This document shows positions 15,870-18,322 of a DNA stretch of 64,000 nt, piece after piece. Every line of letters begins with the position of its first letter. The first letter of the stretch is position 1. Position numbers and translations under genes: made by a program. Under the pieces are notes generated by a model that saw only the letters and a program-made list of their open reading frames with translations, did no database searches and had not been told where the DNA came from. The stretch is from Bacillus subtilis subsp. subtilis str. 168 (GTDB taxonomy: Bacteria > Bacillota > Bacilli > Bacillales > Bacillaceae): contig NC_000964.3 in assembly GCF_000009045.1 (NCBI RefSeq), positions 1,922,001 to 1,986,000 on the forward strand, written 5' to 3'.

Positions 15870-15901
15870 AAAAAACCCGCTCATACTATATGAGCGGGTT
15901 T
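15870..15901. terminator. Bidirectional terminator parC / ynfC-sORF
   Basis: 13-bp stem AAACCCGCTCATA-cta-TATGAGCGGGTTT. Confidence 0.9.
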
Positions 15902-15914
15902 CGTTTGTTTTTTA

Positions 15915-16040
15915 TCAGCTTTCATGGTTGGTGAATAGATCTGTTACAGCATGAATGACTTCAATCCCCTGCCATACAAATAAATTCAGCGCTGTGAAAG
16001 AAAATAAGCCTAAAATCACCATTCTTAAGATAAACAACAT
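15915..16040 (-). CDS. Small hydrophobic membrane protein, 41 aa (not in ORF track)
   Basis: MLFILRMVILGLFSFTALNLFVWQGIEVIHAVTDLFTNHES; strong SD GAGGAGG 9 nt upstream; starts 25 nt after the ynfC stop; followed by the shared terminator. Confidence 0.72.
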   Translation of the reverse strand: MLFILRMVILGLFSFTALNLFVWQGIEVIHAVTDLFTNHES

Positions 16041-16065
16041 GTTTAACAGCCTCCTCATATTTTCG

Positions 16066-16419
16066 TTACATAATCGGGTGATGTTGAACATGAAGTTTGC
16101 CGAAATAAGACGATTGATAAAATTTGGCCAGTATAAAGCTTTTTTTCCGCTGACGTCTGCGGGAGTATCCCGTACTTTTGCTTTCAGCGGTCAGCAGCAG
16201 AACAGCCATTGCCCATAAAGCGGTCAGCGTAAATGCCCCTGTGATGGATTTCTTCTCATCATCAGCATTTTGGCCGGCTTTCATCTCATGCATTTCCTGC
16301 TGGTCGGCTACGGCTTTATAATGATGGCCGATATCAAAGGCGTGGGGAATTGAGAACAAATGAAAACTGGCAATCGCCAAGAATAAGATGGATGCTTTCA
16401 ATATCGTTACTTTTTTCAA
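16066..16419 (-). CDS. ynfC: YnfC, two-TM membrane protein of unknown function (117 aa, TTG start)
   Basis: SD AAAGGAGG before TTG at 16419; the promoter lies downstream of the ORF-track ATG (16476), which supports the shorter start. Confidence 0.8.
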   Translation of the reverse strand: MKKVTILKASILFLAIASFHLFSIPHAFDIGHHYKAVADQQEMHEMKAGQNADDEKKSITGAFTLTALWAMAVLLLTAESKSTGYSRRRQRKKSFILAKFYQSSYFGKLHVQHHPIM

Positions 16420-16459
16420 ATGATCTCCCCCTCCTTTAATATTACTGAATATTTTTATA

Positions 16460-16488
16460 ATAATACCCCAATCCATCCTAAAAGTAAA
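16460..16488 (-). promoter_or_regulatory. sigmaA promoter for ynfC-sORF
   Basis: TTTACT-17-TATTAT on the minus strand. Confidence 0.6.
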
Positions 16489-16824
16489 CCTGATTTATTA
16501 AATTTAAAAATAAATTTAACTTTGTTAAGTATATATCTTTTTGCTTATTTTTGAAAGAGAAAACTTCTTTTATTAGCGTATGTATACCCGGTTTATGGTG
16601 TGAATAAAAACATATTTTAAATGATATGTTGTTTAGGATTTATTACTTTATTTATGTGTAAATCAAAGAGAAAGGCAAGAGAATGGGAAGAAATGATTAC
16701 ATTGTTAATAGGGTACTCTTTTTTTAAAGCCAGTTTGCAAGGAATGTTTTTATTCGTAGGAAAATAATAGAGAAGGGGTCGACAGAGTAACATCTGGCTA
16801 TGACAATATTCTTCTCGAAAAAAC

Positions 16825-16852
16825 TTCCTAATTCGTCATATTGTGATATAAT
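16825..16852 (+). promoter_or_regulatory. sigmaA promoter of alsT
   Basis: TTCCTA-16-TATAAT with extended TGn motif (TG at 16844-16845). Confidence 0.7.
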
Positions 16853-16863
16853 AAAACTCGTTA

Positions 16864-16880
16864 TGTTAAAAAATCTAACA
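16864..16880. promoter_or_regulatory. TnrA/GlnR box just downstream of the alsT start site (repressive position)
   Basis: TGTTA-aaaaatc-TAACA is a perfect TGTNA-N7-TNACA. Confidence 0.85.
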
Positions 16881-16924
16881 TCAAAATCGAATTCGTATTG
16901 AATTGATGAAAACGGGAGGTAAAT

Positions 16925-18322
16925 ATGGAGTCTTTTTTCAATAGTTTGATTAATATTCCAAGTGATTTCATCTGGAAATACCTATTTTATATTTTAATAG
17001 GGCTTGGATTATTTTTTACCATACGTTTTGGTTTTATCCAATTCCGTTATTTTATTGAAATGTTCAGAATAGTAGGGGAGAAGCCGGAAGGAAATAAAGG
17101 TGTTTCATCTATGCAGGCATTCTTTATTTCGGCCGCATCCCGAGTCGGCACAGGGAATTTGACTGGTGTAGCCTTAGCAATTGCGACAGGCGGACCAGGC
17201 GCTGTATTTTGGATGTGGGTAGTGGCTGCAGTAGGCATGGCTTCAAGCTTTGTCGAAAGTACATTAGCACAGCTTTATAAGGTAAGAGACGGGGAGGATT
17301 TCCGCGGAGGGCCGGCCTACTATATTCAAAAGGGTCTTGGTGCCAGATGGCTTGGCATCGTTTTTGCAATCTTAATTACCGTCTCATTCGGCTTGATTTT
17401 TAACGCTGTTCAAACAAATACAATTGCTGGAGCATTGGATGGCGCATTCCATGTAAATAAAATAGTTGTAGCCATAGTTCTGGCGGTTTTAACTGCGTTT
17501 ATCATTTTCGGCGGTTTAAAACGTGTTGTCGCTGTTTCACAGCTAATTGTGCCGGTTATGGCAGGCATTTATATTCTTATCGCTTTATTTGTTGTCATCA
17601 CGAATATTACGGCTTTCCCTGGCGTTATCGCTACAATTGTTAAAAATGCTTTAGGTTTTGAACAAGTCGTCGGCGGCGGAATAGGCGGCATCATCGTTAT
17701 CGGTGCGCAACGCGGACTTTTTTCAAACGAAGCAGGAATGGGGAGCGCACCAAACGCGGCTGCGACGGCTCATGTATCCCATCCGGCAAAGCAAGGCTTT
17801 ATTCAAACATTAGGCGTATTTTTCGATACATTTATCATATGTACGTCCACAGCATTTATTATTTTGCTGTACAGTGTAACGCCAAAAGGCGACGGCATCC
17901 AAGTCACACAGGCTGCTCTTAACCATCACATTGGAGGCTGGGCGCCGACTTTCATCGCAGTCGCAATGTTCTTGTTTGCATTCAGTTCAGTTGTCGGCAA
18001 CTATTATTATGGCGAGACAAACATTGAATTTATTAAAACAAGCAAAACATGGCTGAACATTTACCGTATCGCTGTTATTGCTATGGTTGTGTATGGATCT
18101 TTATCAGGCTTCCAAATCGTTTGGGATATGGCGGACCTCTTTATGGGTATCATGGCGCTGATCAACTTAATTGTGATTGCGCTGCTGTCAAACGTTGCTT
18201 ACAAAGTGTATAAAGATTACGCGAAACAGCGTAAGCAAGGACTTGATCCTGTGTTTAAAGCGAAAAACATCCCAGGGCTGAAAAACGCTGAAACATGGGA
18301 AGATGAGAAACAAGAAGCATAA
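16925..18322 (+). CDS. alsT: Amino acid:cation symporter (AGCS family) AlsT
   Basis: 465 aa; ASRVGTGNLTGVA, GGPGAVFWMW, RGGPAYY, RGLFSNEAGMGSAP. Confidence 0.97.
   Translation: MESFFNSLINIPSDFIWKYLFYILIGLGLFFTIRFGFIQFRYFIEMFRIVGEKPEGNKGVSSMQAFFISAASRVGTGNLTGVALAIATGGPGAVFWMWVVAAVGMASSFVESTLAQLYKVRDGEDFRGGPAYYIQKGLGARWLGIVFAILITVSFGLIFNAVQTNTIAGALDGAFHVNKIVVAIVLAVLTAFIIFGGLKRVVAVSQLIVPVMAGIYILIALFVVITNITAFPGVIATIVKNALGFEQVVGGGIGGIIVIGAQRGLFSNEAGMGSAPNAAATAHVSHPAKQGFIQTLGVFFDTFIICTSTAFIILLYSVTPKGDGIQVTQAALNHHIGGWAPTFIAVAMFLFAFSSVVGNYYYGETNIEFIKTSKTWLNIYRIAVIAMVVYGSLSGFQIVWDMADLFMGIMALINLIVIALLSNVAYKVYKDYAKQRKQGLDPVFKAKNIPGLKNAETWEDEKQEA

Follow-up and report, generated by a model that had tools for sequence, protein, structure and literature searches.

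A conserved hairpin at the ynfC locus points to probable translational coupling of two small Bacillus membrane proteins

Introduction

What does ynfC of Bacillus subtilis, which encodes a small putative membrane protein, have to do with the 41-codon gene that follows it on the same strand? Even in B. subtilis, the model organism among Gram-positive bacteria, neither a function nor a family has been assigned to the pair, and no publication deals with it. We analysed the ynfC locus in a 64,000-nucleotide (nt) stretch of the chromosome of B. subtilis subsp. subtilis str. 168 (NC_000964.3, positions 1,922,001 to 1,986,000 of the forward strand; hereafter the window, in whose own numbering positions are given). 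An initial annotation, made from the letters of the window alone, had described a "hidden" 41-residue membrane peptide encoded behind ynfC and had offered the pair as an uncharacterised system, in which YnfC might act as a nascent-chain sensor by analogy with MifM-yidC2. Our analysis favours another wiring. An RNA hairpin conserved in the family pairs the 3′ end of ynfC with the initiation site of the small gene, and we consider it probable (about 60%) that the two small membrane proteins are made together by translational coupling and assemble into a complex.

Results

The two genes are inherited as a pair

Linked conservation had been named as a check at the outset, and the two genes turned out to be adjacent in every related locus recovered. 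The small gene lies 18–47 nt downstream of a YnfC homologue, in the same order, in all 39 related loci fetched, including those in which YnfC is ~35–45% identical, and the pair is present in 15 of 15 species of the subtilis group. A profile hidden Markov model (HMM) of YnfC, searched exhaustively against 1.84 billion representative proteins, retrieved about 8 true representatives of the family; with so few relatives in a set of this size, the YnfC family is narrow. All four distant representatives (35–45% identity) are followed by a 40–41-codon gene, again at a distance of 18–47 nt. Seeding the search with the peptide gave the reciprocal picture, as a YnfC-like open reading frame (ORF) ends 24–43 nt upstream in every locus recovered in this way (B. 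licheniformis, B. capparidis, pumilus-like Bacillus and metagenomic relatives). The pair was also found on 14 of 14 metagenome contigs, including two lineages at 44–57% peptide identity, and no unlinked copy of ynfC or of the peptide gene appeared among the loci recovered from either side.

The module mostly sits between alsT and parC, or adjoins one of the two, in genomes whose ParC is 70–82% identical. This arrangement points to vertical inheritance at a syntenic site and does not suggest a functional tie of the module to topoisomerase IV. Judged by its genomic distribution, the pair is a predicted two-gene operon confined to a narrow range of Bacillus lineages. The initial description of an uncharacterised system is borne out to this extent: the pair is real and strictly linked, and we found neither an assigned family nor a publication for it.

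The 41-codon gene encodes a strongly constrained membrane peptide

The spacer between the ynfC stop codon and the ATG of the small gene measures 25 nt and contains the Shine-Dalgarno (SD) sequence GAGGAGG, just as originally read. This SD is invariant in 16 subtilis-group sequences, and an SD of the GGAGG type precedes the small gene in all distant loci. We rejected a 58-residue version of the small ORF starting at ATG 16091, since 1-nt indels in the spacer break its frame in other species; because of this, and because the invariant SD precedes the 41-codon frame, ATG 16040 is taken as the true start.

The product has one transmembrane (TM) segment at about residues 7–23, with R6 in front of it and an acidic, His-containing tail behind it (net charge −3). 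Among eight aligned sequences R6, I9, F13, S14, T16, L20, Q24, G25, I26, E27, H30 and F36 are invariant; when more distant relatives are added, QGIE still is and H30 is not. By the positive-inside rule, the peptide would be oriented N-in/C-out, with its QGIExxH tail facing outward. We delimit the family by a length of 38–41 residues, one TM segment, Q-G-I-E after this segment and a gene 18–47 nt downstream of a YnfC homologue, all of which the peptide of the window shows.

The peptide is more strongly conserved than its partner. Within the 15 subtilis-group species it is 90–100% identical, against 72–97% for YnfC, and it keeps 53–73% identity across the compared lineages where YnfC falls to 34–45%. 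The ratio of non-synonymous to synonymous substitution rates (dN/dS), another check proposed at the outset, ranges from 0.00 to 0.15 overall for the small gene and from 0.02 to 0.05 against its most distant members, at dS values of 1.1–2.0. For ynfC the corresponding values are 0.04–0.18 and 0.13–0.15. By these measures, the 41-codon gene is protein-coding and under purifying selection.

Could the conserved stretch nevertheless be an RNA element in the 3′ untranslated region of ynfC, with a small ORF that is not translated? Proteomic or ribosome-profiling support for the peptide was not found in the searchable literature, which would suit such an element. However, substitutions are overwhelmingly synonymous (dN/dS of 0.02–0.05 at dS > 1), the length is held at 38–41 codons, the SD and AUG are invariant, and the amino-acid motif has survived in relatives at 44% identity despite divergence of the nucleotides. 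We find a non-coding element hardly credible in the face of these data.

The peptide was hidden only from the ORF track that accompanied the initial annotation. Its exact sequence has been called on at least 1000 public contigs, and its relatives stand in RefSeq/GenBank as a 41-residue "hypothetical protein" (for example RBAM_017920), with depositions from the amyloliquefaciens, atrophaeus, inaquosorum, halotolerans, pumilus/safensis/altitudinis, licheniformis and capparidis groups. Searches of Pfam, NCBIfam, PHROGs, PADLOC and PDB sequences returned no family match for the peptide and no homology to any named small protein. Likewise, a literature search by ynfC, peptide sequence, locus tags and B. 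subtilis small-ORF surveys found no description of it.

YnfC carries conserved polar residues and a hallmark tail

The conserved start of ynfC is TTG 16419, preceded by AAAGGAGGGGG; it is replaced by ATG in two species and gives a protein of 117 residues. A 136-residue version beginning at ATG 16476 was rejected, as this ATG lies upstream of the −10 box, runs into a stop codon in other species and is not conserved. The longer version is the one given by the mechanical ORF list and by some database entries.

Hydropathy, charge and a family alignment divide YnfC into several parts. An N-terminal MKK leads into TM1 (about residues 9–28), in which S18, H20 and S23 are invariant and H26 nearly so. 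An acidic, His-rich loop follows (29–59, net charge −3; H32, K35, D39 and E42 conserved), then TM2 (about 60–78), which is poorly conserved, and a basic RRRQRKK stretch. The C-terminal tail carries the motif F-x-L-A-x-F-Y-Q-S-S-Y-F, the best-conserved part of the family. Alignment of 15 homologues identified S18, H20, S23, H32, K35, K93, A98, Y101, S103, Y105 and V111 as invariant and FYQSSYF as the family hallmark, so that the tail had rightly been singled out as distinctive. FYQSSYF is conserved as protein, with synonymous differences among relatives. The motif lies 5–14 codons from the stop codon, and its distance to TM2 is free of indels though the sequence of TM2 varies. By hydropathy and charge, both products of the locus look like small membrane proteins, in line with the initial annotation.

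We describe the YnfC family by MKK and a TM segment with S-x-H-x-x-S, an acidic His loop, a second TM segment and F-Y-(Q/H)-S-S-Y-(F/L), and take the protein of the window, which shows each of these features, as the reference member. It has no significant match in Pfam, NCBIfam, PHROGs, PADLOC or PDB sequences; a partial match to Pfam DUF6264 (13.9 bits, E = 0.063, against a gathering threshold of 31 bits) was rejected. An AlphaFold2 model built from a 15-sequence alignment (predicted local distance difference test score 66, predicted template modelling score 0.27) contained low-confidence helices 2–23 and 41–112 alone and was judged too poor for a fold search. The positive-inside rule would place both termini of YnfC inside and the acidic His loop outside. 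With invariant polar residues in both TM1 and the loop, YnfC looks like a working protein rather than a disposable leader.

A conserved hairpin covers the initiation site of the peptide gene

The initial annotation had reported no strong SD-occluding hairpin. Contrary to this, the 3′ end of ynfC folds back onto the start codon and part of the SD of the small gene in a conserved hairpin (Table 1). Codons 104–113 of ynfC make up its 5′ arm. The apical part holds the stop codon of ynfC, and the 3′ arm extends from within the SD over the spacer and the AUG through codons 2–6 of the small gene. At its core CAUGUU (16092–16087, His110-Val111 of YnfC) pairs with AACAUG (16043–16038), which contains the peptide start codon.

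Outside B. subtilis, folding z-scores were −4.15 in atrophaeus, −3.88 in velezensis, −4.0 in licheniformis, −2.1 in the pumilus-like lineage and −3.7, −3.4 and −2.4 in the capparidis clade, with values of −1.5 to −3.2 at further loci. In nearly every lineage the minimum free energy (MFE) structure pairs the AUG with ynfC codons at a pairing probability of 0.74–1.0; the exception is locus L017, where the U of the AUG has a probability of 0.03 and the A and G of 0.97–0.98. The means of occlusion vary. In the capparidis clade UCAUCAUUUGUU pairs with AACAAAAUGAUGA and AUCUGCCAG with the whole SD, at locus L036 the SD is hidden by long pyrimidine/purine tracts spanning the ynfC 3′ end, and at locus L038 an anti-SD is placed just 3′ of the ynfC stop codon. 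In the two most distant lineages, the partner of the initiation region differs from the standard ynfC arm.

Pairing at the 24 consensus pairs reaches 98.5% within the subtilis group, where most of them are invariant. One clean compensatory change affects synonymous sites of the two ORFs at once, namely TCT to TCG (Ser) in ynfC and AGA to CGA (Arg) in the peptide gene. We then ran a covariance model built on the subtilis group against the other lineages. The model hit the homologous position in each of 10 distant loci (E-values between 8.5e-15 and 6e-3). Across these loci 89% of cells pair, against 40–58% with the partner slid. Double-sided changes are seen in 12 of the 24 pairs; shuffles gave 6.9 ± 1.4, and none of the 500 reached 12. 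The covariation score in the covariance-model alignment was 0.356 versus 0.128, and a separate count over nine lineage representatives gave a similar result.

Two features of the coding sequences point in this direction as well. Synonymous variants per codon drop to 0.3 in ynfC codons 104–113, the lowest value of the gene, against 0.96 elsewhere, and to 0.4 in peptide codons 2–6 against 1.15. Residue 110 of YnfC is H, R or F (CAU, CGU or UUU) and shifts together with its pairing partner AUG, ACG or AAA (16082–16092 versus 16038–16048), so that RNA structure apparently dictates a protein residue here. Judging from the alignments, the extreme C terminus of YnfC seems to be shaped by RNA, unlike FYQSSYF, which is conserved as protein. 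Taken together, the SD and start codon of the small gene are paired with the ynfC 3′ end and this pairing is conserved, with the caveats from recoding and from RNAalifold that are given below. By sequence comparison, the hairpin is well supported across the family and only moderately stable in the B. subtilis genome.

Translational coupling as the favoured reading

We favour a reading in which the hairpin couples translation of the peptide to that of YnfC. On free mRNA, it would hide the AUG and part of the SD of the peptide gene. A ribosome that translates ynfC to its end, through the final ~14 codons to the stop codon in the hairpin apex, and terminates there would then melt the 5′ arm and expose the site. 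The peptide would thus be produced only where an mRNA is also yielding YnfC, on one membrane-bound polysome and at a fixed ratio to it. Coupled synthesis in a set ratio is what we would expect for two subunits of one complex. YnfC and the peptide may assemble as a small hetero-oligomeric membrane complex, in which the outward loop of YnfC (H26, H32, D39, E42) and the QGIExxH tail of the peptide could form a shared cation- or proton-binding surface.

Several observations weigh against this reading. In B. subtilis itself the hairpin has an MFE of −17.7 kcal/mol and a z-score of −1.69, with 10 of 200 shuffles folding equally well, and at locus L016 the z-score is −0.9. Among synonymous recodings of the ynfC arm, 63% fold no worse than the native B. 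subtilis sequence, so that codon choice alone shows no selection for pairing in this species; in the same control codon-level selection was likewise not seen at L016, and trends elsewhere were weak. Pairing is carried mainly by codon positions 1 and 2, i.e., by the amino-acid sequence. RNAalifold predicted no pairs from a plain MAFFT alignment of all lineages, which we attribute to the differing pairing register between clades, and the covariation counts come from a model-fitted alignment that is biased towards structure. The strong SD of the peptide gene could permit some independent initiation, and both the coupling and the complex are deduced from features of sequence and predicted structure. 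Furthermore, a gfp-ermC cassette in place of ynfC left growth in lysogeny broth (LB) unchanged (PMC6547408), and frameshifted ynfC alleles exist in strains. The absence of an LB growth defect and the existence of these alleles show the module to be dispensable in the laboratory, and its role is probably conditional.

Part of this evidence would suit a simpler explanation, in which the two small membrane proteins are co-transcribed and independently translated and the hairpin is a by-product of AT-richness, CAU/AUG complementarity and protein constraints. The hairpin is marginal in B. subtilis. Synonymous recoding of its 5′ arm leaves the frequency of pairing with the AUG about unchanged, and the strong SD of B. 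subtilis is paired only in part. On the other hand, occlusion recurs in every lineage, with differing sequences and registers (B. capparidis, L036 and L038), the double-sided changes exceed shuffled and slid controls, and synonymous sites in both arms are unusually invariant. We regard independent translation as unlikely, though by no means far-fetched.

Nascent-chain monitoring and toxicity as alternatives

The hairpin also bears on the proposed MifM-yidC2 analogy and, being conserved, makes such an idea architecturally more plausible than the initial annotation had assumed. Following MifM and SecM, YnfC would serve at least partly as a regulatory nascent chain, in which FxLAxFYQSSYF would arrest elongation a few codons before the stop codon, and the stalled ribosome would hold the hairpin open and thereby induce the peptide. 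Insertion of TM2, or folding of or ligand binding by the outer loop, would pull on the chain and release the arrest. In the published scheme for monitoring substrates, the N terminus targets the membrane, a C-terminal segment is conserved and the initiation site of the downstream gene is hidden in a stem-loop (PMC10987492); the architecture of the ynfC locus (N-terminal TM segment, C-terminal motif, stem-loop) fits this scheme. The tail motif is kept as an amino-acid sequence, its codons differing synonymously, and ends 5–14 codons before the stop codon, and no indels occur between TM2 and the motif, while the sequence of TM2 is free to vary. We estimate from the geometry that a ribosome whose P-site stands near F106 would extend as far as CAUGUU, the partner of the AUG.

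The analogy fails, however, at the downstream gene, which encodes a 41-residue peptide instead of a Sec or YidC component. YnfC shows no similarity to known arrest-peptide families (no significant Pfam or NCBIfam hit), its invariant S18, H20, S23, H32 and K35 in TM1 and the loop suggest a working protein, and plain coupling accounts for the hairpin without arrest, at least as well. We consider arrest improbable. The same doubt attaches to the fuller proposal that YnfC is a force- or ligand-sensitive arrest peptide that would report its own insertion, or the state of its His/acidic loop (pH or metal), and control the 41-residue peptide.

Type I toxins are short, hydrophobic, single-TM peptides with a charged tail and an occluded ribosome-binding site; an antisense RNA encoded in cis overlaps the toxin mRNA, and their distribution is typically patchy and often tied to mobile elements or prophages. 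The ynfC-linked peptide resembles them in size, hydrophobicity, single TM segment, charged tail and occluded ribosome-binding site. It could thus be imagined as a membrane-damaging peptide whose structured start keeps translation low, with YnfC as its modulator or immunity partner. Yet the plus strand at 15872–16435 has no promoter-like site opposite the gene, with the reservation that a consensus scan cannot exclude an antisense promoter. The locus is vertically inherited at its syntenic position between alsT and parC, and is neither mobile nor prophage-borne. Purifying selection is very strong and conservation clade-wide, in contrast to patchy type I toxins, and PADLOC and PHROG searches returned no hits. 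A toxin is accordingly very unlikely in our view, and translational coupling of two partner proteins remains the reading that we prefer.

Layout and transcription of the ynfC locus

All sequence features were located where the initial annotation had placed them, with the minus-strand order promoter, G-rich SD, ynfC, spacer, 41-codon gene and terminator (Table 1).

Table 1 Features of the ynfC locus in window coordinates.
Feature	Coordinates	Strand	Description and basis
Sigma-A-type promoter	16460..16488	−	−35 TTTACT 16488–16483, 17-nt spacer, −10 TATTAT 16465–16460; consensus scan
ynfC SD region	16425..16437	−	AAAGGAGGGGGAG; read from the sequence, G-rich block conserved in the alignment
ynfC	16066..16419	−	117 codons plus stop, TTG start; stop codon 16068–16066
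A7 run in the RKK codons of ynfC	16140..16146	−	Loss of one A fuses YnfC residues 1–93 in frame to the 41-residue peptide (167 residues)
Imperfect RNA hairpin	16023..16110	−	Folding of ynfC (last 45 nt), spacer and codons 1–6 of the small gene
SD of the 41-codon gene	16050..16056	−	GAGGAGG, 9 nt before the AUG; read from the sequence
41-codon gene	15915..16040	−	ATG 16040, stop codon 15917–15915; product MLFILRMVILGLFSFTALNLFVWQGIEVIHAVTDLFTNHES
Intrinsic terminator of the operon	15872..15902	−	14-bp stem, 6 GC pairs, T-run; scan

The annotated promoter was recovered by the scan, which by itself performs at chance level (6 sites versus 5.0 expected). Both hexamers are nevertheless invariant across 16 B. 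subtilis-group sequences, in contrast to the variable spacer that separates them; comparable −35 and extended −10 elements are seen upstream of distant homologues. Two further blocks near the promoter are conserved in the subtilis group. Upstream of the −35 hexamer, a block at 16489–16540 on the minus strand consists of GATATATACTTAAC followed by an AT-rich palindrome, AAATTTA-TTTT-TAAATTT, and ATAAAAATATTCAG (16457–16444) lies just 3′ of the −10 hexamer. Such blocks could form a UP element and/or an operator for a regulator; they are not kept in distant lineages.

At the other end, the terminator that the operon was said to share with parC could be confirmed, since the mirror image of its palindrome ends the convergent parC on the plus strand (15873–15901), making it bidirectional. 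It is conserved within the subtilis group, and equivalent hairpins lie 3′ of the small gene in distant loci. An Rfam search at a permissive threshold gave merely sub-threshold matches, on this terminator. As expected of a two-gene unit, a scan of the minus strand saw no promoter-like or terminator-like site between ynfC and the small gene, and between 16460 and 15902 the sole signal of either kind is a weak 5-bp stem within ynfC (16380–16367). The scan supports the prediction of a single transcription unit. On the plus strand, antisense within ynfC, there is also a terminator-like stem with a T-rich tail (16158–16174), which is probably a chance match.

The locus, identified as the ynfC locus of B. 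subtilis, is flanked by parE-parC on one side and by alsT, followed by an endoglucanase gene, on the other. The divergent intergenic region between ynfC and alsT (about 16490–16925) is unusually long at roughly 430 nt. One in vitro study lists a region "upstream of ynfC and alsT" to which DnaA binds weakly and without saturation (PMC4447404). In two B. licheniformis loci (L020 and L023, positions 499–843) a second ORF of 114 residues, without a Pfam hit, lies across alsT from the ynfC homologue, which it equals in length.

Strain alleles and expression

Removing one A of the A7 run from the window sequence reproduces P0025 exactly. This protein is the "ynfC" of B. subtilis PY79 and BEST strains (25 contigs), and further frameshifted ynfC alleles occur in strains (P0008, P0009, P0015 and P0018). 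Programmed frameshifting at A7 was rejected, as synonymous AAG codons break the run in several species and the +1 frame is out of register with the peptide in species with 24-nt spacers. The alignments indicate that the fusion allele is a strain polymorphism or a homopolymer sequencing error. A fusion of YnfC to the peptide in some strains fits the predicted topology, in which the C-in end of YnfC would lead into the N-in end of the peptide. The gene itself is expressed: its microarray probe gave a signal that rose by 1.9 log2 (roughly 3.7-fold) with benzoate, and ynfC is also among the salicylate-induced genes (PMC2788229).

Discussion

The hairpin gives a testable handle on the expression of a gene pair to which no function has been assigned. 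It is also a natural RNA structure that arises from two overlapping coding constraints and has undergone compensatory synonymous changes. With a dN/dS of about 0.03, the peptide is among the more strongly constrained sequences of its neighbourhood, which suggests a specific molecular job. Were the arrest-sensor reading true, it would extend the monitoring-substrate principle beyond Sec/YidC genes to a small-protein effector and broaden the scope of nascent-chain regulation; if it is false, the locus would show ordinary translational coupling of two subunits of a small membrane complex. In the coupling that we favour, the wiring is of a known kind, initiation-site occlusion, and what is new is the narrow family of two small membrane proteins that it would connect.

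Translational coupling through a hairpin that hides the downstream start is familiar from the coat and replicase genes of phage MS2 and from the infC-rpmI-rplT operon of E. coli. The ynfC operon shares with them an SD and AUG paired with the 3′ part of the upstream ORF, a short intergenic distance and the expectation that ribosomes finishing the upstream ORF open the site. It differs in that both of its products are tiny membrane proteins and in that coupling is here predicted from the sequence.

Compared with MifM-yidC2 of B. subtilis, SecM-secA and VemP-secDF2 (PMC10987492, PMC6037786), YnfC has a similar N-terminal membrane segment and a conserved C-terminal stretch near its stop codon, and a stem-loop masks the downstream start and overlaps the region that a stalled ribosome would occupy. 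Unlike in those systems, the gene downstream of ynfC encodes a 41-residue peptide instead of SecA, SecDF or YidC. YnfC has no sequence similarity to MifM, SecM or VemP, it carries conserved polar residues in TM1 and the loop, and arrest in YnfC is hypothetical. The peptide, in turn, resembles the small single-pass membrane proteins that serve bacteria as subunits or regulators of bigger proteins: it has about 40 residues, one TM helix and a short charged tail, and it was overlooked by ORF-length cut-offs. What sets it apart from them is its genomic partner, which is the 117-residue, two-TM YnfC and not a transporter, a kinase or an oxidase.

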